Part shown: one piece after another, positions 19,595-63,924 of the stretch
How positions within the stretch are numbered: position 1 is the stretch's first letter
Layout of the letters: every line of letters begins with the position of its first letter
Assembly (NCBI GenBank): GCA_003427395.1
Contig: BFEA01000014.1
Location: forward strand, 5,804,223-5,868,222
Source of the DNA: Chara braunii
Taxonomy: Eukaryota > Plantae > Charophyceae
Direction: 5' to 3'
DNA length: 64,000 nucleotides
Translations under genes and position numbers: made by a program
Notes under the pieces: generated by a model
What the model was told of the DNA's origin: nothing
Database searches by the model: none
The model's input: only the letters and a program-made list of their open reading frames with translations

Positions 19595-21328
19595 TTATTG
19601 GGCCGGAAGAAGAAGGGGGAAGTGGAGAGGAGGGGGGAGACAGAGGAGGGGAAGATGGACAAGAAGGGGGAGGAAAGGCGGAGGAGGGGAAGATGGAAAA
19701 GAGGAAGGGGGAGAAGGAGGGGGAGAGGGAGAGGGAGAAGGAGAAGCGAAGGAAAGAGGAGGAGAAGGTGGAAGAGGATGATGCACGGACCAGCGAAGCA
19801 TACGTCGAAACCATTGTGTAAGACGAGTTACATGTATAGGTTGTCGACGTTGGCGAGCACGAATGTAACAAGTCCATCCACGGGCCAATGTCGAAAGAGC
19901 ATGGCCACGAGAAAGCAAACGGCGGACAAGCATGGTTGCCGCAGTTCTGAAAATTAATCATGCCAATTGTCACAAATCCGCTCAAACCGCGTAAGCTGGC
20001 TGGTGAACACACCTGCAGGCTGATGAGACGGAATGTTTGACGTTGCACTAGGATATCGCATAACAGGAAAATCCTATGCAACTGTCTTGTCAAACACACT
20101 CAATCGGAGAGATCCATCTGCTCGTGTCTGCAGTTTCGCACCTAAAAAAGTGCAAGAGCCATCAACTGCAGTGGTCTCCTTCAATTCAAGGTCATAATAG
20201 GTTGGCGATGGTGGCAGACAACCAAAGGTAAGAACATCATCAATGAACCGATAAGTGAAAACATATCGGTGAGCTGCAGAGGGATCCACAGGCTGCAGGT
20301 TGTCCACGTACTGTGCCTCATCCCAATAGAGTGTGAGGTTAGCAATCTCAGGACCAACGTTTGTACCCATGGAAATACCCACGTCTTGATGACGAACAAG
20401 GCCATCCGCTATATATAGATATGTATTAGTAACAACAAAACGAAGATGTTGACCGAACAAGGCCATCCGCTGTTTATAGATATGTATTAGTAACAACAAA
20501 ACGAAGATGTTGAAGAATGCCAGACACAGAAAGGGCGTCAGATCCCATATCCGTAGTCCATTCCCCTGCACGCAGTCCACGGACCACCATACGAAGAGCA
20601 ACACAGGATGAGTGTGTCCGTGTATGCTGCTATGCCTGTGTAAGAGCATCGGCATGTGCCTCATCAACAGCCTTAGCAACATTGTCAAGAATCCGTTGAT
20701 GACAAAGATTAGTATACATAGTAGTGAAATCGACTGTATGGGGGCCCAGACCTCGGAAAGAAGCTTTATTCTTTTGAGGTCAAGCATGACCTCGTCACTA
20801 CTCTGGACAATCCAACATCAACGAATACCTTCGGATTGGAAGAGTTGATTATCTTTTTCACGAAGAGTACGGATGACGCCTTGAAGTGCCGCACTCAAAC
20901 AAGCCGACGTATGTGTCGTACTAGCAACAGGCTTGTGAGGCGGTCGGTGATGCAAACGCTGGACTCGTTGGGAGGGGCGCAGGTCACTTCGCTGGGCCGT
21001 ATGAGAAGAAGAAAGATTGTTGCGGGCAGTGATACCAAGAATAGTACAGAGTGTGGGAGGAGACTTATGGGCCTTAAACCACCAGTANTTGGCCCAGCTA
21101 TCGNCCGCGGCGCTTTCCCGTTAACGCGCCGCGGCTTTAGGGCTTCAGGGTACCGGACCTCAATGGCTGGAAGCGCCAGCCAAAACAATTTTGAAACGGT
21201 ACCCCGGCGCTTCGGCGAAAATCGGTGTGCAGGGGCATTCCAGGCTCGGCATCGATAGCTGGGCCAAGTACTGGTGATTTAAGAGCACAATAAAGATACG
21301 GCAATGTGTCAGCATGAGGATAATTCCA
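19595..21328 (-). mobile_element. Penelope-like element fragment (Naiad/Chlamys-type RT)
   Basis: LPYLYCALKAHKSP (after removing the MITE), WIVQSSDEV, DFTTMYTNL, GISMGTNVGPEIANL, YRFIDD, FLG...SVFDK, YPSATSNIPSHQP, thumb WFRRMLRW followed by an S/P-rich linker; 61-bp tandem duplication at ~20395-20512. Confidence 0.88.
21078..21278. mobile_element. 201-bp MITE with TTAA TSD (piggyBac/Kolobok-like)
   Basis: ~26-bp TIR A(C/T)CACCAGTACTTGGCCCAGCTATCG; TTAA at 21074-77 and 21279-82; excision restores the PLE RT frame. Confidence 0.85.
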
Positions 21329-21640: not shown

Positions 21641-21660
21641 TATATATACGTATATATACA

Positions 21661-21778
21661 TCATCAAACAGAGCTGCCCGGTAAACCGTAGGCAGAGAGG
21701 GAGAAAAGGACAACAACCGAGGGGTTGTGACAAACTGTTTCGTCGGAGCTTCACCGACTCATCAGGAGGCTTAACCCT
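21661..21778 (-). ncRNA. Hammerhead ribozyme-bearing PLE terminal fragment, 5'-truncated at the cleavage site and flanked by (TA)n
   Basis: AGGGTTAAGCCTC-CTGATGA-GTCGG-tgaagct-CCGAC-GAAACAG; lacks the 5' stem III strand and GUC present in the intact copy at 50000-50055. Confidence 0.85.
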
Positions 21779-34538: not shown

Positions 34539-34628
34539 GGGAACGAACCTGATGATCTGTGGCGGGATATCGATGAACAGACGAAGCTGTGAGAGGCACA
34601 TGGGTGCAAAGGTAATGCTGAGAGTCGG

Positions 34629-37501
34629 ATGAGAGCGCTGGTCCTAGGATTGATTGTGGTTGGTGAGTTGCGATGGGGGGAGAAATGTTTGGAGTTGTGG
34701 AGGCAGGAAGCCCGCTTTGGAAGACTAGACCTTCAATCCCCACGGAGTTGTGTATATGTGGTAATATCTCCGTGGTATAAACAGATTTATGTGGGCATGA
34801 CGGAAAGGAGTCTAGCGGAGAGATGGACAACACACTTGAGGTGTGTAAAGCAGGGTGATAAGAAGCGTTCGCGGAACCTGTACAACAGGTTGGGCAAGGT
34901 GGGGGTGCACATGTACGTAGTGGTATCGGTATTCTTTAGTGCGGATAGAAGGGAGTTGGAGGCAGTTGAAAGAACATTGATTAGAATGTGGTCACCGTCC
35001 CTCAACTCAAAGGGGGTAAAGCGAAGATCAAGGAGGCGTAGGAGACCAGGAAGGAAAGAGCGACGAGAGGCTGTTGCGAGCAAGGTGAAAGGGAGTGGGG
35101 AGGAGAAAACAGAGAGGAAAGTCGAAGGGAACAACACGATAGTAGCGTTGAGAAGGGATGGAGGGGAAAGGACAGTAAGGGTGATCGAACTTCTACGGAG
35201 TTTGGCAAAGGTCCCGCGCGGAGTCAAGACACGTATGTGGTCGGATGGCGGGCGGAGCTGGGCGGACAATTGGCGAGTTGTACGACGAACCTTTGGGGAA
35301 TCACGGGTGATAGTGGGCAAACGCACTAGGCCGTTACGGAAGTGCAAGAAGCTGTTCGGGGTGGAAGGATGGATTATGGTTCGGGATGTGGTGGAAGCGA
35401 CGCCAAGAACATTGAAGCTGAAGCAGGAGCTGGTGAGTATTTTCAAGGACAGGCGGAAGATGCGGCTGCTGTACAGCAAAACGCAAGAAGAACTAGTCAA
35501 CTATTACGCGGCGGCGAAACTGTTTTCTGAAAAGAGGAGTAGATCCAGAGGGAGACGGGTGATTTCCGACGTGTTAAGGAGGAGCTTTGGGCTGAGCATT
35601 CGAAGGAGGATAGTTGTGAAGGTCGAGTTTGATGAGAGGATTAAGAAGAGCAAGGTAGTGAATCTGACGCGGCAAGGGATTGGGAGACTGCCTCTCAATA
35701 ATGCGATTGCGGGAATGGTGCGTAGACGCAATCATGTCGTTTGGACGAGAAGTCCGAACGTGGGTGATATAATCCATAATCACCGACGTTTTGCGGCGGA
35801 TGGAGTCTCTGAGTGCATCTGCACTAGCATGCCCCTCCCAAAAGAGGGTGGGCACGTCCATTTCCGTATTGGCAATTGGGATGGATGTCCGACGATAGCC
35901 CGTAACGCTAAGAATGTACCGCGGAATGTGAAGGATGGTCTGGTGGCGAGACTGTCGAAGAAACTAGCTGACAACTTTGCTGACCTGAGCTGGTTGGGAA
36001 AGGGAATGGGACAGATGGAGTTTGCGCAGGAGGAGATTGAGATATGTGTGTCGAAGAGTAGGACAGACAACTGTGATGATGCAGACGCGGTTCAGCGAGT
36101 GCGTGAAGGACTGAATGGGCTGGTGTGTTGCCCTTTGGATCGCAATCCTGGGGACACTCTGGTCATGTGTCCGGTCACGTACGCAGAAGGGATGAAAACG
36201 ACCTCTACAGCTAATGATGGCTACGTAATTCGAGAGGAATCGGAGGACGAGATTATCAATCTTTTGCACACTGAGTATGGAAAAAGGAAATTTGGGCAGA
36301 TTGGAGAATGGAAGAAGGATGGAAAATTGGGCAGGGCTTATATTCTTCCTAAACATAAGGATACGGCTAAATATCGGCCAATCTACCCAACTTTCAGTGA
36401 GCCTAGTGGGAGGGCTTGCAAGAAGGTGGCTCGTGCTTTGAATGGAATGTTGTTCTCGGTCCCTGAGAGTAAACATTTTAATTTGAAGTCTGTGTCTGAG
36501 TTGTGTGACCGCCTTATCGGAATTAATCAGCGTATGCGTCGTGCTTATAAGGATGTGCAGGTGTTGAGCGACTCCTACGATATCAAAGATATGTTTAGCA
36601 GACTCCCCCATGCGACGATTGTGAGTGTTGTGGATTGGTTCATTTGGTGGTTTGGGTCGAAAGGCCTACAGGGTGTCTTTGTTAGCAAGAGGGGTAAAGG
36701 GACGATGTTTAGCAAAGGGAAGAGTGTGGATGGTTTTCAATTTATAAATTTTGGGATGATTCGGGAGTTTGTTCTTTTTGAATTGGGAGGGTGTTTCACA
36801 GTGGCAAGGAGGGTAATCCTGCAACAGGTTGTCGGTATTCCCATGGGAAAATCGACTAGCCCACCACTTGCATGCATGATGTGTGCGAAAGCAAAATGGG
36901 ATTTTTTTGTTACACTAGGGAATGACAGACGTCTTGTGGCAAAGCTTCGCTATGTGGATGATCCATCGGTGTTTGTAGCCTTTGATTCCCGACGACCGGA
37001 ATCGAGAAGGAAAGCAGAGGAGATCATTGAAAGCTTTGAAGTTTGCTACAACAAAGCTTTGCCCTGAGGAAAACTGATGATGGGAAGGATTCCTAGGATT
37101 TCCTGGGATGTCGCTTGAGGGTAAAGAAGGAATTTCCTTTCGTTGGTTGTTGTCTAGCTATGAAAAATGAGAAAGAACTACTTAAGGGTGAAGAGCTGAT
37201 TTTCAGGGTTTTTCAGGACTTTGAGTCGTGGGCGAGTAAGAAATCAAAGATGGCCGTTGTGATGAGCACGTTGCACAGGATCTACCAGAACTCGATGACA
37301 AGCATGGAGTTGATCGAGGTGCTCCTGTTGTTGAAGCTGGAGCTGAGAAGAAGGAACTACCCGATCCATTTTTTCGGGAGGGCCTTGAGAAGCTTCGCGA
37401 GAGACAAGAGTCTTGTGTGGAAGTTGCTGGCTGAAATGCTGGGAGGCGGCTGGAACATGAAAGTCTTGGGAAATCCGGGATGCACGAGAGACCGATGCTA
37501 A
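34629..37501 (+). pseudogene. PLE ORF2: GIY-YIG endonuclease plus reverse transcriptase
   Basis: CVYVVISPWYKQIYVGMTERSLAERWTTH...E...LN; AYILPKHKD..KYRPI; YDIKDMFSRLPH; QQVVGIPMGKSTSPPLA; RYVDD; thumb continues at 37115-37501 after a frameshift/stop. Confidence 0.92.
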
Positions 37502-42650: not shown

Positions 42651-42757
42651 GCCTCCTCATGAGTCGGTGAAACTCCGACGAAACAGTTTGTCACAGCCCC
42701 TCGTTTGTTGTCCTCTTCTCCCTCTCTACCTACAGTTTACCGGGCAGTTCTATTTGA

Positions 42758-42760
<3 letters not shown>
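42651..42760 (+). ncRNA. Hammerhead-bearing PLE terminal fragment between (TA)n tracts, with mutated core
   Basis: GCCTC-CTCATGA-GTCGG-tgaaact-CCGAC-GAAACAG...tttgacga(TA)n; homologous to 21661-21778. Confidence 0.8.
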
Positions 42761-42792
<32 letters not shown>

Positions 42793-42795
<3 letters not shown>

Positions 42796-43441
42796 GGTGA
42801 CCAGCCCGTACGTACGGAGGTCCCCGGGCAGATCTCCGTACGTATGGGCGTTCGGGGCCCCATACAGGGTCCAAACCCGACGGCGTTCGGCCCCCGCCAA
42901 AAAATATTTCGGGGCCTAAAAATAATCATTTTTTTCTCAATTGTTTTTTTTTTACTTCTCTATGACGTGAGGTACATACCTGTAATTTTTCAATTCATTT
43001 GGCCAAGCCAAATAAGAATTAAAAATCACCAAAGATGGCGGTGTCAAAACGTGTTCGCCCATGTATTCTTTTACTTTTTACTTTTTGTTTTCACTTCAGT
43101 TCGGGATCTAAACAATTTTATTATTTTTTGAAAATTTTTTAGTGGGTTTTGTATTATGTGAAGTAAACATCTGTAAATTTTCAGGGCATTTAGCTTTGCC
43201 AAAACAAAATGAAAAATCGCAAAGATGGCGGTGTCGAAAACATGCTCGCCCACTCACTACATTTACATCTCTTTTTATTTTTATTTATTTTTATTATTAG
43301 TATTTGTTTTCCGTATTTTATTTTTATTTCAAATTTAGTAAGGAAATCGGATGTAATGCTCAGGCAAATCTTATTAAGTTTATTTTTCGCCATAACATAT
43401 CTTTTTTTCAGATTTTGTTTATTATCTTTTTTTTTTTTTTT
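42793..43441 (+). mobile_element. hAT-like MITE (CAGGGTGACC) running into a gap
   Basis: Homologous to 21330-21640 and to the reverse complement of 44560-45178. Confidence 0.75.
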
Positions 43442-44380
43442 NNNNNNNNNNNNNNNNNNNNNNNNNNNNNNNNNNNNNNNNNNNNNNNNNNNNNNNNNNN
43501 NNNNNNNNNNNNNNNNNNNNNNNNNNNNNNNNNNNNNNNNNNNNNNNNNNNNNNNNNNNNNNNNNNNNNNNNNNNNNNNNNNNNNNNNNNNNNNNNNNNN
43601 NNNNNNNNNNNNNNNNNNNNNNNNNNNNNNNNNNNNNNNNNNNNNNNNNNNNNNNNNNNNNNNNNNNNNNNNNNNNNNNNNNNNNNNNNNNNNNNNNNNN
43701 NNNNNNNNNNNNNNNNNNNNNNNNNNNNNNNNNNNNNNNNNNNNNNNNNNNNNNNNNNNNNNNNNNNNNNNNNNNNNNNNNNNNNNNNNNNNNNNNNNNN
43801 NNNNNNNNNNNNNNNNNNNNNNNNNNNNNNNNNNNNNNNNNNNNNNNNNNNNNNNNNNNNNNNNNNNNNNNNNNNNNNNNNNNNNNNNNNNNNNNNNNNN
43901 NNNNNNNNNNNNNNNNNNNNNNNNNNNNNNNNNNNNNNNNNNNNNNNNNNNNNNNNNNNNNNNNNNNNNNNNNNNNNNNNNNNNNNNNNNNNNNNNNNNN
44001 NNNNNNNNNNNNNNNNNNNNNNNNNNNNNNNNNNNNNNNNNNNNNNNNNNNNNNNNNNNNNNNNNNNNNNNNNNNNNNNNNNNNNNNNNNNNNNNNNNNN
44101 NNNNNNNNNNNNNNNNNNNNNNNNNNNNNNNNNNNNNNNNNNNNNNNNNNNNNNNNNNNNNNNNNNNNNNNNNNNNNNNNNNNNNNNNNNNNNNNNNNNN
44201 NNNNNNNNNNNNNNNNNNNNNNNNNNNNNNNNNNNNNNNNNNNNNNNNNNNNNNNNNNNNNNNNNNNNNNNNNNNNNNNNNNNNNNNNNNNNNNNNNNNN
44301 NNNNNNNNNNNNNNNNNNNNNNNNNNNNNNNNNNNNNNNNNNNNNNNNNNNNNNNNNNNNNACCGGGCAGTTCTATTTGA

Positions 44381-44415
<35 letters not shown>

Positions 44416-44418
<3 letters not shown>

Positions 44419-45178
44419 GGTTGCCGGTGTTCGGGATGGGCCGAACGCCCGAACTTGAACGCCCGAACGTACGGGACCCCTTCGGGAGGCGTTCCGCCGT
44501 TCGGGCCGCACGCGGACAAAAAAAAAAAAAAAAAAGTTTTCAAACAATTCCCAAAAAAAACTCTGTTATGAAGAAACATAAATTAAACAACATTTGTCTG
44601 GGCACTACATCCAAATTGTTTACCAAATTTAAATTAAAAATCCAATACAGAAAATAAACACTGTGATAAAAATAAAAAAAAATAAAAAGAGAATTAAAAT
44701 CAGTGAGTGTGCCAGCACCTTTTCGACACCGCCATCTTTGCCGATTTTTAATTATTTTTCGGCATTGACAAATGCCTTGAAAATTTACAGATATGTAGTT
44801 TACATAATCAATAACTCATTAAAAGTTTTTCAAAAAATAATAAATTTTTTTAGGCCCCGAAATAAAGTGAAAACAAAAAGGTAAAAGGTGAAACAAACCG
44901 AAATAGTGAGTGGGCAAGCACGTTTTGACACCCCCATCTTTGACGATTTTTAATGTTTTTTAGGCTTAGCATAATGGCTTCAAAATTGATAGGCGTGTAG
45001 GTTACATCATAGAGAACTCACAAAAAAAACTTCAGAAAACAAAACTTATTTTTAAGCCCCGAAATATTTTTTGGTGGGGGCCGAACCTGGAGTTGTTCGG
45101 CCCCTGAACAGGACCCCGAACGCCCGAACATTCGGGGGCCAGCCCAGGGCCCCCCGAACGTTCGGTCAGGTAACCCTG
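44416..45178. mobile_element. Complete hAT-like MITE within (TA)n
   Basis: TIR CAGGGTTRCC at both ends; CCGAAC/GTTCGG subterminal repeats; (TA)n on both sides. Confidence 0.8.
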
Positions 45179-45192
45179 TATATATATTTATA

Positions 45193-45242
<50 letters not shown>

Positions 45243-45264
45243 GTTGTCCCACAACTCTCTATGG

Positions 45265-45570
45265 TCAGAGACATGTACAATGGCCATGTAAGGCAGGGAT
45301 GTGGGATGAAGGGTTAAACCACTCACCTGCTCGAGCATTGCGTAGTTCAAGTTGACGGTCCCTCATTGTTACTTGTAGGACAACAATGGTAAAGCCTCCT
45401 TCGCTGGTAAAATTACAATCCTCTGGCTGTTGTTGGGGAAGATCAGCATCAAGCTGAAAAGCGATTGCAAGGAAGTCTGATGGTGTATAAAACAGGCGAT
45501 GGAGAATGTGAAGACATATATTAGTTGTTGTCAAACCACAAAGATTGGTAAGGCTCTCAGGCTGGTTTGT
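45265..45570 (-). pseudogene. Josephin (ataxin-3-like) cysteine protease domain, truncated
   Basis: NLCG...FYTPSDFLAIAFQLD...QQPEDCNFTSEGGFTIVVLQVTMRDRQLEL...HGH versus ataxin-3 SLCA...FSPVELSSIAHQLD...QQPSGNMDDSGFFSIQVISNALKVWGLEL...EHW. Confidence 0.8.
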
Positions 45571-46374
45571 TAGATGTTGCCCAACAATTTGCAAATCACC
45601 CAGATGGCGTTGCAAGCCCAACCTGTGTTGGGTTGTTTGTTGGTCAGTCATTTGCAGATCACCCATGTGGTCTGCGTGTGGCGGAGCACAAAATTTTGTT
45701 TCATCCGAACAATGTTGGTCAGCCATTTGCAGATCCCCCATGTGGTCTACGCGTTGTGGGGTCAACTGCAATCCGGGTAGATCATGTTCCAATCTCTCAA
45801 CATTTAGGGATGCATCATGAGTAGGGATTATACCTGGAGTCGGGAGTGTACTCTAGGCAGCGGCTGCATTCTGAGTAGGGACTAGTGGCTGCCAGCAGGC
45901 AGCTGGACTGTTTGCAAGAGTCATAGGAGCTGATATTGTCGTTTGGAACAAAGGAACCGCAACAACCTATGGAGGAGGCACAATCAGCGAAGACAAAGAA
46001 ACAGGTTGCTGATCCTCGGACAAGTCACGGTGTCGCGGATGTCGTCGGTGATACACAACAAGAGGAGTAGTGGTGTTGCAAACAGAAGCTGAATTTGTAC
46101 CTAGCAACGCAGGTGGAACAAGGGGAAAAATGGAAACTCGAGAGTCTATTCGCAAGCGAGACCGTGGAGGAGATGGGGGTGGTGAGGAGGAACGCAGTCG
46201 TCATCGGCCAAGCACAGGCAAAGATGAGGTGGGGGTGCGTTGGGCAAGATTTCGGAGCAAAGGACGTGAGCGTCGAAAAGATTGTGATGTTCTTTGCATT
46301 AGAGCTGCAGGACATGAAGCTATAGCAGTAAAAACTAAAGTAGGGGGAATTACAGTTAGGAAACCTGCTATACT

Positions 46375-46625
46375 GAAAACTGCAGCAGTGGAAACTGGAG
46401 CGGCAGAAACTGGAGCAGTGGAAACTGGAGCAATGGAAACTGCAGCAAAGGAAACCGCAACAGTGGACACTGCAACAGTGGAAACCGGAGCAGTGGAAAC
46501 TGCAGCAGTGGACACTTCAGCAGTGGAAACCGCAACAGTGGACACTGCAGCAGTGAAAACTGCAGAAGTGGAGACTTCAACAATGAAAACTGGAGGAGTG
46601 GAGACTGCAACAGTGAAAACTGCGG
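46375..46625. repeat. 15-bp minisatellite (gaaactgcagcagtg)n in the PLE linker
   Basis: About 16 degenerate units encoding (STAAV)n on the minus strand. Confidence 0.9.
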
Positions 46626-47302
46626 TAGCAGCAAATGAGTAAGCAGGGGGCAGAACGAGAGCATCGTGGGGGCGAAGAAGAAATTGGATGATACAAGGAC
46701 CATCGCAACATGCGCCGGAACCACTTAGAGAGATGCGTCACATGTGTAGGATAGCGACGTTGGCGGAAGCGCATGTAGCAGGTCCACCCCTTAGCAAGGG
46801 TTGGTGGGGAATGCCCACGCGAAAGCATACAACGAGTAAGTGTTGTTGCCACAGTTCGAAAGTTGTTACAGATTTGTTCAAATCTGGTCAATTGCCCAAT
46901 GAACACACTAGCCGGTTGATGGGAAGGGATGTTGGAGGTCGCACTTGGATAACGAATAACAGTAAAATCCCAAGCAGTCGCTTAATCAAAGACGCTCATG
47001 TGAAGCGAGCCATCGGGACGGCACCATGGTCCATGCCATGATTGATGTCATTGATTTCTTACATGATGCTGTTTTCTTGCCACAACAAACCGTCTGCAAT
47101 CTTTTTTATGTCGAAGATCATTCCTCTGGCCCCGTGCTGCAGCAAAACAATGCACCAACACTCTGCGACCTTCTCCTTTGCACAACCACAAACACTGTTA
47201 CACTCAGTTGTAGCCGCCATTGTCTCTGTCACAATCACTACAATGACATGGTTTCGACATCTGCATGTGCAGAGGATTTTTCTCACCATTCATGACTGCA
47301 GG

Positions 47303-48219
47303 CAGGGTTGTCACGCGTGGGCCCCCGGGGGCAAAGTCGAGGTAGGGGTTTGACCCCCGGACCCCCGCCGCGGGGGTGCCTTACCCCCACCCACCCCAAA
47401 ACACCCCCGNNNNNNNNNNNNNNNNNNNNNNNNNNNNNNNNNNNNNNNNNNNNNNNNNNNNNNNNNNNNNNNNNNNNNNNNNNNNNNNNNNNNNNNNNNN
47501 NNNNNNNNNNNNNNNNNNNNNNNNNNNNNNNNNNNNNNNNNNNNNNNNNNNNNNNNNNNNNNNNNNNNNNNNNNNNNNNNNNNNNNNNNNNNNNNNNNNN
47601 NNNNNNNNNNNNNNNNNNNNNNNNNNNNNNNNNNNNNNNNNNNNNNNNNNNNNNNNNNNNNNNNNNNNNNNNNNNNNNNNNNNNNNNNNNNNNNNNNNNN
47701 NNNNNNNNNNNNNNNNNNNNNNNNNNNNNNNNNNNNNNNNNNNNNNNNNNNNNNNNNNNNNNNNNNNNNNNNNNNNNNNNNNNNNNNNNNNNNNNNNNNN
47801 NNNNNNNNNNNNNNNNNNNNNNNNNNNNNNNNNNNNNNNNNNNNNNNNNNNNNNNNNNNNNNNNNNNNNNNNNNNNNNNNNNNNNNNNNNNNNNNNNNNN
47901 NNNNNNNNNNNNNNNNNNNNNNNNNNNNNNNNNNNNNNNNNNNNNNNNNNNNNNNCACCCCGCTAGGCCCCACCCCCGGCCCCGCGCCCGCACTACCCCG
48001 GGCTCACGAGGGTGTGGTGTAGACCGGGGGGGGGGGCCAAGGTCTGGCCAAAACTGCAATATTGCAGTTTGGCCCAGGGGGTGCAGGCTGCAGCTTCGCA
48101 CCCCCCTGTATTTTTTTTTATTTTTTTATTTTTTTACTTTTTCTGTCGGGGCCAGGGGTGCCGACCCCCGGCCCCCGGGACCCCCGCCGGGGCCCCGGGG
48201 CCGGGGCTCGACAACCCTG
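47303..48219. mobile_element. hAT-like MITE with TIR CAGGGTTGTC and CCCCGG subterminal motifs
   Basis: CAGGGTTGTC...GACAACCCTG; internal gap; flanks do not form a TSD. Confidence 0.65.
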
Positions 48220-49184
48220 GTTAGAGGAGCTGCACAAGCAGTAAGACGAGCTCCTTCAGATGGATCAAACCCAGTTCGTCTCCCTTTGGAGCACCTGTTT
48301 TGTTTGTCCCCAAAAAGGAAGGAGAGCTGCGCATGTGTATAGACTATAGGGGTCTGAATGCGATTACTATGGAGAACGCTGAGCCGCTGCCCAGGAAAGA
48401 CGATCTTCTAGATCGGGTGCAGGGTTGTAAGTATTTCTCAAAGATAGATTTGAAGTCCGGGTATCATCAGATAGAAGGCCATCCTGATGACCAGTACAAG
48501 ACTGGACTCGTTATGGGCATTATGAGTTTATAGTGATGCCCTTTGGACTAACCAACGCACCAGCTACATTTCAGCATTGTATGAATGATCTATTTAGACC
48601 GTGGTTAGATAAGTTTGTAGTAGTCTATTTATATGATATATTAGTATTCAGCAGGACCCTCCAAGAGCATCAGGGTTTGAGGCAGGTGGGCCAAGACACA
48701 AATTTTGTACTTCGCCCACGTTTTAGACGGAGATGGCATTAAGCCTGAGGACAACAAGATAGCGGGAATTAGAGAGTGGCCAACGCCCCACACATTGACT
48801 CAATTGCGGTCGTTCCTAGGCCTAGCTAATTATTACAGGAAGTTCGTGAGGAACTTCTCCACTATCGCCGCAAGGGTCCCTTGCACAGGTTGCTAAAGAA
48901 AGCGGCAATCTGGCAATGGGATAAAGACTGTACATCTGCGCCTATGTTGCACGCCCGGTCACGGTCGGGGCCGAAAAATCGGCCGCGGCCACGGCCGTCG
49001 ACCAAATCGGTCGGGTCTGGCCACGGCCGACCAGCCAAGTTTGGTGCAGCATTTTTCTTTATTTTTATAACTCATCAAAAAAACAAAATGGGCGTGTAGG
49101 GCTAAAATGGGGCATTGTTGTTTTCTATTGCGTTAAAAAAAAAAAAAAATGAAAAAAAAAAAAACGTTTCCAAACCCCGCGCAA

Positions 49185-59603: not shown

Positions 59604-59792
59604 TTGATGAGTTGGTGAAAGTCCGACGAAACAGTCTGACACACTCATCCTTTTGTTTGTGAAGTTGTGTGTAGCGAACATGACAACACACACACTCCAG
59701 ATAGGTCAACGAAAGTTCGACAAAACACTCTGGCACAGTCATGCTTTTTCTGTGGAATTGTCACTTGTGTATAGCGAACATGACAACACACA
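59604..59792 (+). repeat. Two tandem degenerate hammerhead-bearing PLE terminal units, each ending in (CA)n
   Basis: TTGATGA-GTTGG-tgaaagt-CCGAC-GAAAC...agcgaacatgacaa(CA)n, plus a second more decayed copy. Confidence 0.7.
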
Positions 59793-62700
59793 CGAGGCAA
59801 GAATCCAAGTGCGGCCGTACGGCTCACTTCGCATAGGTGTATTTGATAAGGTTGAGGCTGGGACATTCCCTGTCATACATTATCCCAGTGCTTCCTCCAA
59901 TACCCCAGCTCATCAGCCTGCAGGTGTGCTAACGGGACAATTAACGAGGTTCGAACATATTTGTAACAATACTACCGACTTCAAAGCGACAGTGACTTCT
60001 TTGACATGACGTATGCTTGTTAGGGGGCATCCTCCTAGTGTCCTGGGCAAAGGCTGGACGACATATGTGCATGGCCTGCAGCGCCGGCTACCCACTCATG
60101 TCACTCGATATGTGCATGGCCTGCAGCGCCGGCTACCCACTCATGTCACTCGACTCTTAAATTGGTTTCGTTGCATGGTGCGCTGGGCCATTGCTCACCC
60201 ACTGCTGAATGCACACTCCACATACAGACCCTCCTCCCGATCACATGCAACAGGCCATCACCCAATCCCAAACACCAATTATGGCTGCAGGCGACATCAG
60301 CCCTCCACACAGCACGCGGTACAGCAGGTCTACCCCCTCCTGTTATTCCTGTTGAACTGGCAAACGCCAACGTGGATACGCCAGCCCAGCCGGAGAACGG
60401 GCATACCGAAAGGGTGCCTCCTTCCTCACTGCCGCTGCCACCACCACCACCATCACGACCTCCTCCTCGTCCACCACCACCATCACCACTACCACCTCCT
60501 CCCCCACCGCCACTACAATAGGTGTCCCCACCACCATCGCCACCGGCATCCCCACCACCATCATCATCATCCCCATCACCATCGCCAGCACCTTCCCCGC
60601 CGACATCTTCTACAGTATCCCCCCAGTCATCTAACCCCTCCTCTACTGCTTCTTCTTCCTCCCCTTCTTCTACTTCTTCTGCTTCTTCTTCTTCTTCCTC
60701 TTTTTTCTCTTCTTCCTCTTCCCTACCCTCTTTGTCATCCCCCCCCTACTCCTCTACCTTGCCTGATTCATCATCTTCATCATCGACACATTCCTGGTCA
60801 GATCAGCCGTTGCGGCGACCCCTTTGCCCAAGGCATCCACAGTCAAGTCGGCCATCCCAAACACCTCATCGGCGGAGGCACTCCCTGTCTTCACCACCAT
60901 CTCCAAGACAGCGACCTCGTTTGTCCATGTACAGCATGATCACCGCGCCCCCTGCAAGGGTTCGAGATCTGCTCCGACACTATGCCCGCAACTGTACAGA
61001 ACGGCGACGTCGAGCTCAATACACACTAGCCTGGAATAGTACAAATCGAGTCCGATGCCAAAAATTTGGCGACAATTTCTTCAATATTACGAGCCTGCGG
61101 GTGCATCAGACACAGGGTGCGGCCGCCTGTGCAGCTTTTGGGCGACTGCCAGCCACCTTAAGTACAAGTGCGGCTGATCAGCCGCCATTACCTGCATCTG
61201 ACCCACCCATTTCTCCCCCACCTGGCCTCGCATGCTTCCCGGCCCCAATGGTCAATGACTTGCCTTCTGATCATTTGATGGAGCCTTTGACTGAAGATGA
61301 CCTTTGTCCTGTGCGTGTGCTATATCCAATGCAGTTGACACGAATGGAGGAACCTGACAGAAACGATCAAGACCACAATGAATCTCCGCCTGCTGTGCAA
61401 TCCACATAATTGATTGAACTGCCCCCTGCCGCACAACACGCAGAATCAGATGATCTCATAGTGCGACAGCGAGGCCACTGTGCGTACTATGCTATCAATG
61501 GAAGTCTCCTCGCGTACAATTGTAACCCATACACCGTTTCTGATTTCGCGAATATTGTCTGCTGGATAGAAGAAGAGCACAGTGCTGTCTGCCCAGAGGA
61601 TGACAGTATGGGTCTTGGACAGCGTTCGGGCATACACATAGCTTGTGAACTACATATCGCCTAGTACGGGCTATATCCAGAAGTTTCCACACATGATGCT
61701 GATGTACATTTCGAAACATAGATTCACAGAGCATACACAGCCTTCGGGTATACGTATAGCTTGCAAACTACACATCGCCTACGGGCTACATACACAAGTT
61801 TCCCGGTGCGTACATACATACAACTATAATATCAGGCTGGGGGGGTCTAATCACTGGGTGGGGTCTAGTATCTGCAGTAGGTTCAGGTAGGGGTTCCTAC
61901 TAACATTCGGATAGAACTGTCTGGTGGCATATATAAGGCTTAGACACTAGGGTAAGGGTAGGGATATAAATCGCTCAGGCCAGTCCGAGTTCCACCTGAC
62001 CTTGGGTAAGCTAGGGGAAGGACGGGAAGACTGCTTCAGTGGGTGCTAACCTGTCTGAACCTAGGGTCCATAGTCTCTTGGGGCCTGTAGTAGATTGTCT
62101 GCCAGTGGGCCTGTCGTCGGAAGTTCCTGTTCGACAAGGCTGGCCCGATTCTGCTTCCAACAAAGCTGGGCAACCTATCAGCCCTGGTGCCTATCATTGC
62201 TGTTCGGTCCAAGTTGCCTGCCCATTGGTAGGGCAATGGTCCTGAGTGCGGGTCACACTGAGGTAGGATAGTGGGATAGGGAGTGCGCTAGGAGTAATGA
62301 CGTGAGGATGGGATGGGAGGTGGTCTCGTATTCCAGGACACCCGTGGCTCACAGCTCTAGGTGATCACTGTGCACTCAGTGACTGGCCTCTACAACAACT
62401 TGGACTTGGGTAGAAGACTATAACTGCAGCCTGCTCCCAAGAACCACATGCCAGACATGGACTCAAATATTTGCGCGTACATCCCTCGTTGTCCAGGTCA
62501 TTTCAGCTATGTGACCTTTGCAGATAATTCATGGGCCTTATAGGACAATGGCGCTAGGGTGCACATCGTAAGTAGTATTAACTCTTTCGATAACCAAATA
62601 GCAAATACTCACTCAATTTGGATTGCCGCCAGGAACAGTATGTTACTTCGCACCGACAAGCGCTTCCGTCTCTGAAGAGCAAAAAAATCCGGATGCACAA

Positions 62701-63200
62701 TCACCTTCTTCCCCTGCACATCGCCAAGCAGTGTCCCCTCCCTGTGTAGATCAGACAGATTCTGCTCCAAACAATGAAGGAACCCCCTTAGAAGATGTTG
62801 ATTGTGCCCTTCCATTTTGTGGCCACACAACCACAGTTTGGTTAGCATGCACAGTGCATAGTGTCTGCCCCGAACACTATGAAGGGATGGTCACTGCCAG
62901 CCTCTGTCGCGAAAACTGCGACTCTTTGTCTTGTCTTCATCCCCCCCACCCCCTAATCACTTGTCAAATATGCCGTCGTGGCCTTAATCTGCCATGCTTA
63001 AATAGTTGTGAACGTTAGTCTGCCTTCCTGCTGATATGTCAGCAACATGCCATGTGTCATTAATGTTTCCAAGAAGTTGTCATAGAAAGCCTGTGTCTCT
63101 ACTGCATGGACTATCCACAATGCCATCCTTCGCCACATCCTCTCTTAGTATGTCACATGCAGAGTTGGGCACACACTTGCTGCAAACGTCATTGGATTTC
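59793..63200 (+). mobile_element. PLE 3' part: RT thumb, P/S linker, zinc finger, Josephin-like domain (split by an insertion), Cys/His-rich region
   Basis: GSLRIGVFDK, YPSASSNTPAHQP, GQLTRFEHIC, WFRCMVRW; 45-bp in-frame duplication at ~60063-60152; CQK(F)-x12-H; QRGHCAYYAIN (61460-61500); PGHFSYV...WAL*DN (62490-62550). Confidence 0.85.
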
Positions 63201-63924
63201 CTTCGTTCTTGCCCCGAGGAACGACAAACTCAGCAGCCTGAGCAGGATAATAGAGTACCATATGAACCGCTTATAGAGCGCTGTGCTGAAGGGCTAACAC
63301 CACCAGAACGAACTGATGCATAAAAAATCCTGCAGCAGCCAGACAACCTTGTTTTGGATGACCCCCTCTTGCCACAGTCGTCGTCGTCATCGGACCGTAG
63401 AGAATGAATCAATGCCGACAATACCCAACTTAAAGACACTTGCTCAATCATTATGCCGTTTTGTGATGATCCACCTGATATTCGGCTAGCACGTGGGTTG
63501 CATGCATTGTGTCATGAGGATTATGAAGGTACAGCCCGTGCATCTTTTTGTTTTCATACATATGATGATAATCAATACTGCACTCAAATCCGGCACCCTG
63601 ACATGTCATGTCCAATTTATAAGTGATATTTGTCTACGCCTTTATAAGCGCGGTCGGCGTGCCTCTGTGTTCCTCGCCTCTGGGAGCCACATTGTCTGTG
63701 ATATTTGTCTACGCCTTGCCATTTGGTGCAGCAACTGCGACTGCGAGAATTGGATGCGATGCTTCCACAGTCCGCAACGGAATCAGTGCTGTCCAGTCCG
63801 TGTGGCCACCTACCATAGCCAATGACTACTCCTCGACAAAAATCATCCTGCAACCCGAACACTAACTGACCTCTCATATCATTCTAGAGTGATCTGCTCC
63901 AACGGTGTGTATAGAGAACCTACT

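Follow-up and report, generated by a model that had tools for sequence, protein, structure and literature searches.

We examined a 64,000-nucleotide stretch of the Chara braunii genome (contig BFEA01000014.1; the whole stretch is called the window here), and in particular a locus between 45179 and about 47304 where the end of a reverse transcriptase (RT) is followed by a segment resembling ataxin-3's Josephin domain. The locus is very probably a dead, rearranged insertion of a high-copy C. braunii family of Penelope-like elements (PLEs), of the published Chlamys-1_cBra type, whose open reading frame (ORF) carries a Josephin-family domain. On the minus strand the RT thumb, an (STAAV)n linker, a finger-like motif and the Josephin-like segment follow one another, an order already described correctly in an earlier reading of this DNA (the original prediction). 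The features of this window copy (copy 1) are as follows.

45179-45239, no strand: (TA)30 microsatellite, adjoining the inverted segment (Tandem Repeats Finder, TRF)
45240-45290, minus: His-box remainder 'YMAIVHVSDHRELWDND' in a shifted frame, end of the inverted segment (tblastn; profile E 2.7e-4)
45291/45292, minus: site of a 23-nt deletion relative to the related C. braunii locus L001 (pairwise DNA alignment)
45292-45573, minus: N-terminal two thirds of the Josephin-like domain (profile built from external sequences only, E 1.3e-30)
45268-45792, minus: Josephin-like open frame of 175 codons (ORF list)
45636-45799, minus: three 'HMGDLQM(A/T)DQ'-like peptide repeats, directly upstream of the Josephin-like domain
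46055-46120, minus: finger-like pattern CxxC-x11/12-H(H)-x3/4-C(C) (regular expression on the translation)
46377-46623, minus: low-complexity linker (STAAV)n, a 15-bp tandem repeat x 16.5 (TRF, self-blastn)
46580-47016, minus: C-terminal part of the RT including the thumb, beginning 'DGSLHMSVFD...' (tblastn to two other copies in the window)
47017-47130, plus: C-terminal part of the Josephin-like domain, 'DGTMVHAMIDVIDF...YVEDHSSG' (tblastn, blastn, profile)
47158-47285, plus: first Cys/His-rich module, partial (DNA and protein alignments to other copies)

Decay and probable inversion of the window copy

The element is 5'-truncated inside the RT at ~47016. Its RT thumb segment matches two further copies in the window by tblastn, at 19784-20010 (minus, E 6e-23) and 59926-60213 (plus, E 1e-21). 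The CxxC-H-C finger pattern proposed for this element was found at the position listed; a diverged relative elsewhere in the window (copy 2, 59653-63822, plus) has a degenerate counterpart only, near 61050-61110. A direct repeat (45638-45679 and 45713-45754, 90% identity in self-blastn) underlies the 'HMGDLQM(A/T)DQ'-like motif. Repeats of this kind also occur in the C. braunii protein P0001 (residues 1-95), and are conserved between the window copy and this C. braunii copy.

The N-terminal two thirds of the Josephin-like domain contain a Cys box, 'NLCGLTTTN', followed by 'YTPSDFLAIAFQLD' and 'GGFTIVVL'. The catalytic Cys codon at 45540-45538, in 'NLCGL', lies within the Josephin-like ORF as originally assigned, and in the HMMER alignment it corresponds to Cys56 of P0004, an intact 261-amino-acid protein from metagenomic contig L002 found by exhaustive HMMER search, and to Cys14 of ataxin-3. 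A catalytic His some 100 residues after this Cys is missing from the window copy and kept in its relatives (His152 in P0004, 'GPGHY' in L001, 62499-62501 in copy 2). The best DNA alignment with L001 has a single 23-nt gap between 45292 and 45291; a local repeat at the deletion allows other placements, which need three gaps rather than one. The deletion takes out the codons for 'CIVHGPGH', catalytic His included, and shifts the frame. Because of this shift, the 'GH' at 45280-45282 that had been taken for the catalytic His is most likely an out-of-frame reading of codons that are M-A-I in relatives; the real His box has been lost.

The copy had also been described as ending in (TA)n before the third catalytic residue. 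This does not hold, as an Asp codon at His+15 is present at 45248-45246 in the shifted frame and the domain resumes on the plus strand at 47017-47130. Further defects comprise three in-frame stops between the thumb and the domain, and the splitting of the domain by an inversion. Given the His-box deletion, the frameshift, the three stops and the split domain, the window copy cannot encode an active enzyme. We also weighed an intron at 'CAG|GTGAGT' near 45310 as an explanation for the altered frame but rejected it, since no AG acceptor precedes the His-box remainder and L001 shows a plain deletion.

The inversion comprises 45240-47016, which is reversed relative to the element, and is followed by a collinear arm from 47017 to ~47285. 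At the joint (47016/47017), which lies in continuous sequence without Ns, the arms overlap by 3 nt, both reaching the same Asp codon of the element. Both halves are contiguous on one strand in L001; genomic contigs and 44 RNA-seq reads likewise show the contiguous form in other copies, with loose ends at 47018/47025. The C-terminal part of the domain is 69% identical to the L001 ORF (tblastn, E 9e-34), and window positions 47017-47304 correspond to L001 10645-10934 at 81% (blastn). Loose ends at 47255 show that other copies run on past that point; likeness to them has run out by 47304, ahead of an N gap that spans 47410-47955. We dropped the idea that 47017-47304 is the 5' end of an element in a tandem array because the L001 open frame runs through this segment into the Cys/His modules.

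LINE-1 (long interspersed nuclear element 1) insertions with inverted 5' ends reportedly arise by twin priming, a process that Ostertag and Kazazian are said to have described in 2001. The window copy resembles such insertions in the succession of target, inverted upstream segment and collinear 3' segment, and in the overlap of a few bases at one position. It differs in being a PLE, in having a mechanism read from topology only, and in having lost its 3' end in the break and the N gap. In vitro, a PLE protein cuts both target strands and extends them (PMC11167929), and PLEs are known for inverted copies that lie next to each other and lack their 5' ends (PMC8557442). Synthesis of complementary DNA primed from both nicked target strands would have left an inverted 5' arm and a collinear 3' arm, in a manner akin to twin priming, with the (TA)30 tract as the probable insertion target. 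Later decay would then account for the 23-nt deletion of the His box, the frameshift and several stops.

Josephin homology through relatives

The assignment of the window copy to the Josephin family depends on the matches of its relatives rather than on its own. The window ORF is 54% identical to P0001 (C. braunii CBR_g37361, a hypothetical protein), whose only Pfam match is Josephin (E 0.004). For the whole of P0004, the Josephin family PF02099 is the only meaningful Pfam match (E 1.6e-5); residues 40-205 reach 26.9 bits, the curated cut-off being 26 (E 5e-6, profile positions 6-121), and Pfam lists no other peptidase family up to E 10. Searched by itself, the N-terminal half of P0004 matches Josephin only (E 0.001). 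A profile of the family run against 177,635 PDB sequences returned only ataxin-3-like (3o65, E 0.44) and ataxin-3 (2dos, E 1.9). In the ESM Atlas feature search, the three clusters nearest to P0004 are all Josephin (0.90, 0.89 and 0.88, with 165-174 shared features), and the ten best family-bearing matches all fall in the Josephin family or clan. The two Josephin clusters nearest to P0004 residues 45-200 consist mostly of Nucleocytoviricota (giant viruses), which is no more than a clue to where the domain came from.

A profile made from outside sequences only recovers window 45852-45268 on the minus strand (E 1.3e-30), the shifted-frame piece (E 2.7e-4) and window 46966-47292 on the plus strand (E 2.6e-18). 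The spacing of the predicted catalytic residues is also that of a Josephin domain. In P0004 the triad is Cys56, His152 and Asp167, with 96 residues from Cys to His and 15 from His to Asp; in human Josephin-2 it is Cys24, His125 and Asp140, with intervals of 101 and 15 (PMC7337049). The residue at His+15 is Asp or Asn depending on the copy, L001 having Asn. On sequence evidence, we take the domain of this family to be a true but distant Josephin member. Its homology is stronger than the published term 'weak' implies; the Pfam threshold is reached in an intact relative.

Compared with the Josephin/MJD proteins (ataxin-3, ataxin-3-like, Josephin-1 and Josephin-2; PF02099), the domain shares a Cys box followed by a 'Y-x-S/P...IA.QLD' helix, a Cys-to-His distance of ~100 residues and a His to Asp/Asn distance of exactly 15. 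The third residue is either Asp, which Josephin-2 has, or Asn, which ataxin-3 has, and the intact relative stands at the threshold of the family profile. Unlike those proteins, it is fused to the C-terminus of an RT and followed by Cys/His modules instead of ubiquitin-interacting motifs or polyglutamine; identity in structural alignments is ~18-21%, and the helical-hairpin region is shorter and poorly modelled.

Few homologues are available. Three homologous-protein searches gave one match each (P0001, P0002 and, for P0004, itself only), too few for a deep alignment, and exhaustive HMMER search with a C-terminal profile returned three proteins only. A metagenome scan gave 38 pattern matches, of which none was confirmed. 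One of these three proteins, P0003 (1706 amino acids), is a host gene model with HEAT repeats. Its final 55 residues correspond to the C-terminal part of the Josephin-like domain of the PLE, and the annotation has probably extended into a piece of the retroelement.

Two to four Cys/His modules follow the Josephin-like domain in this family, and such modules are present in L001, P0002, P0004, the window copy (partial) and copy 2 (four). Their ligand order, C-x3-6-C-x8-9-C-x2-H-x2-C-x2-(H/C) ... C-x2-C, is RING-like by eye. However, the modules have no Pfam match and nothing relevant in the PDB profile search; an AlphaFold2 (AF2) model (predicted local distance difference test, pLDDT, 58) contains a beta-hairpin plus helix only, and Foldseek of this low-confidence model found nothing below E 2.9. 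As none of these analyses lends support, we do not claim a RING identity and speak of a Cys/His motif, as the published description (PMC8557442) does.

Element family, alternative readings and possible function

The combination of RT and Josephin-like domain had been thought unreported in PLEs. In fact, Craig, Yushenova, Rodriguez and Arkhipova (2021) described three kinds of Chlamys-type PLE in C. braunii, one of which, Chlamys-1_cBra, has a C-terminal motif, whose homology to Josephin they term 'weak', followed by a Cys/His motif (PMC8557442). The RT-Josephin fusion of the Chara PLE was published there as one ORF of ~1,800 amino acids, and the parallel with Dualen was drawn in the same paper. 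Because that study describes the same architecture, the claim of novelty fails: the Josephin-like domain of Chara PLEs is already known and the window copy is an ordinary one. What our analysis adds to the 2021 paper is Pfam-threshold homology in an intact relative, a Josephin-like spacing of the triad, the presence of the domain in two diverged lineages and in transcribed copies, and the recognition of the window locus as a dead inverted fragment.

We assign the element to the PLEs on account of its RT motif pattern, a GIY-YIG-linked RT ORF with the same pattern, and the published layout. Sister copy 3 has the RT motifs 'VGISMG...P..ANL' and 'RFIDD'. The ORF concerned, at 34593-37064 (plus), is a frame of 824 codons. 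A GIY-YIG domain lies at its N-terminus (PF01541, 23.5 bits, the cut-off being 22.6), and the RT motifs that come after it, 'VGIPMG...SPPLA' and 'RYVDD', have the pattern seen in copy 3. It is a Chlamys/Naiad-type PLE of another family; BLASTP finds no similarity between this ORF and the RT pieces of copy 1 or copy 3. The motif pattern and the published layout support the initial view, in which the Josephin-like segment is part of a retroelement family whose RT is of the PLE type.

Naiad/Chlamys PLEs target microsatellites, those named for Chlamys being (CA)n and (C)n (PMC8557442). Several of their traits are found here: the copy is 5'-truncated at ~47016, its 5' arm is inverted and it abuts (TA)30, and copy 2 ends at a (CT)n tract; the C-terminal extension of Chlamys-1_cBra, a Josephin-like domain followed by Cys/His modules, is found as well. 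Set beside the published description of Chlamys-1_cBra, the family agrees in host lineage, high copy number, the Josephin-like and Cys/His extension after the RT, 5' truncation, inverted arrangements and microsatellite targets. The window copy departs from it in being broken, in having neither the nuclease nor most of the RT, and in a flank of (TA)n instead of (CA)n or (C)n; it represents that exact family or a sister family. Dualen/RandI elements, which are non-long-terminal-repeat elements, carry a Josephin-like cysteine protease according to Kojima and Fujiwara (2005), as cited in PMC8557442. By description, they are likewise green-lineage retroelements with such a protease as an accessory domain, but Dualen is a LINE with two endonucleases and belongs to another retroelement class.

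The RT-linked Josephin-like segment recurs. Copy 2 has the thumb, a low-complexity linker rich in Pro, His and Ser, the Cys box, the His box and the Cys/His modules in the same order. It keeps the predicted triad codons at 61479-61481 (Cys), 62499-62501 (His) and 62544-62546 (Asp), but has a stop codon at His+14; it contains an internal duplication or insert at ~61660-62420, and its four modules end near a (CT)n tract at ~63930. The order from RT thumb to domain is found again in L001 and in metagenomic contig L002. Between the window copy and L001 the ratio of nonsynonymous to synonymous substitution rates (dN/dS) comes to 0.49 across 77 codons and to 0.41 across 38, a rough figure from dead copies, yet below 1.

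Thousands of contigs from two C. braunii DNA runs map to the stretch, at a depth typical of a high-copy repeat, and an oligo-dT RNA-seq run contains reads 90-99% alike on it; the family is therefore abundant and transcribed. The RNA reads favour opposite strands on the two arms, a pattern expected of sense transcripts from related copies provided that the first mate is antisense to the RNA, which is the case for most stranded libraries. There is no evidence that the window copy itself is expressed, as no reads in this one oligo-dT run are at least 99% alike.

A number of results weigh against our reading of the locus as a PLE insertion with a Josephin-family domain. The N-terminal GIY-YIG nuclease and most of the RT are absent from the truncated copy, and the RT fragments of the window copies match no Pfam or PDB family. 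The original prediction had named a Pfam search as a check on the domain; the window ORFs give no match at E up to 10, and phmmer against PDB yields one irrelevant match and no Josephin. The C-terminal half of P0004, searched alone, has no Josephin match and a weak resemblance to the USP12 His box (E 0.3). The AF2 model of the domain, from a 9-row alignment, has a pLDDT of 55 and a predicted template modelling score (pTM) of 0.38. With this low-confidence model the best Foldseek match is ataxin-3 (2dos) at an E of only 0.13, and VIA-align gives Z 3.9 for Josephin-2 (6pgv) and Z 3.6 for 3o65, against Z 5-6 for unrelated chains. Nor does any independent high-identity read bridge the joint at 47016/47017 among the contigs and reads listed. 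In addition, the ESM Atlas search with the window's own 102-amino-acid piece gave no usable match, and the copy 2 ORFs in the window have no Josephin match in Pfam or by phmmer against PDB. The Josephin identity first proposed stands through the relatives.

An assembly chimera between different copies of an abundant repeat could also account for the (TA)n joint and for the change of strand at 47016/47017. In its favour are the extreme abundance of the family, an assembly rich in gaps (13 N runs), a dip of the summed depth in the bin 46948-47024 and the lack of a listed contig across the joint. We nonetheless consider a chimera unlikely, because no Ns occur there, the overlap at one element position fits two-strand priming and not a random chimera, and inverted 5'-truncated neighbours are known for PLEs (PMC8557442). 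Much less probable is the view of the locus as an unreported PLE lineage whose own Josephin deubiquitinase still works and lacks only its far C-terminal end. The Cys-box and central motifs do lie in an open frame of 175 codons, and the Josephin homology of the family is real; but the architecture is published (PMC8557442), and the copy has lost its His box, has a shifted frame and three stops between thumb and domain, and carries the domain in two parts on opposite strands. The DNA alignment to L001 refutes a working enzyme for the window copy. It is even harder to credit that a fragment of a host Josephin gene came to lie beside an unrelated retroelement by chance. This idea draws on adjacency only and on P0003, in which a HEAT-repeat host protein is fused to a fragment of the domain, whereas the order recurs in copy 2, L001 and L002, the DNA depth is that of a high-copy repeat, and the fusion has been published as a single ORF (PMC8557442).

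The domain might instead be a papain-like protease of another lineage, USP-like or serving in processing, with a Josephin signal due to convergence in short active-site motifs. The His-box half, for which Josephin gave no match, resembles the USP12 motif 'GHYIAIV...W.L.DD', and UCH, USP and PLpro chains are listed in the fold searches at similarly weak scores. Such a lineage is nevertheless quite improbable, as the N-terminal half matches Josephin only, the Cys-to-His distance of 96 is near the 101 of Josephin-2 and USP catalytic domains are far longer, no other Pfam peptidase appears, and the best family-bearing Atlas matches keep to the Josephin family or clan.

For a distant Josephin domain on a PLE, we consider what intact members may do. 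In their long ORF, the RT would be followed by a linker of low complexity and a finger-like motif, and then by a papain-like cysteine peptidase domain of the Josephin family with Cys, His and Asp/Asn, and two to four Cys/His modules. We hypothesize, with a slight preference over other functions, that the domain acts as a deubiquitinase on the protein or ribonucleoprotein of the element, or on nearby chromatin proteins, which would let these escape ubiquitin-dependent disposal. A non-catalytic, ubiquitin-binding role is a less favoured possibility, and self-processing of the long protein seems somewhat less likely still; the original prediction had suggested polyprotein processing or the removal of ubiquitin from host targets as possible roles. 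More tentatively, an active Josephin deubiquitinase and zinc-binding modules could together form a ubiquitin-editing unit that protects the RT protein or remodels target chromatin. This proposal is prompted by the retention of the triad in two diverged lineages, the dN/dS of ~0.4-0.5 and the sense-biased polyadenylated reads over the domain. Accessory enzymes on retrotransposons show how mobile elements handle host control, and a deubiquitinase on a PLE, if confirmed, would suggest that PLEs in the green lineage face ubiquitin-dependent restriction.

Neighbouring repeats

No Rfam family reaches its gathering threshold anywhere in the 64-kb window, and no hammerhead is tied to the window copy. 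Just past the N gap, at 48300-48900 on the plus strand, lie Ty3/gypsy-type RT fragments ('CIDYRGLN', 'YHQI' and 'MPFGL'). Other repeats around L001, unrelated to the element, match the window at 80-93%. A repeat unit that always abuts (TA)n occurs in both orientations at 45018-45178, 42688-43131, 44362-44571 and 21641-21733, and at 9923-10014 in L001. Its versions in the window and at this C. braunii locus agree at up to 93%, and the unit flanks PLE fragments in both; it may be the insertion substrate or the end of another element.

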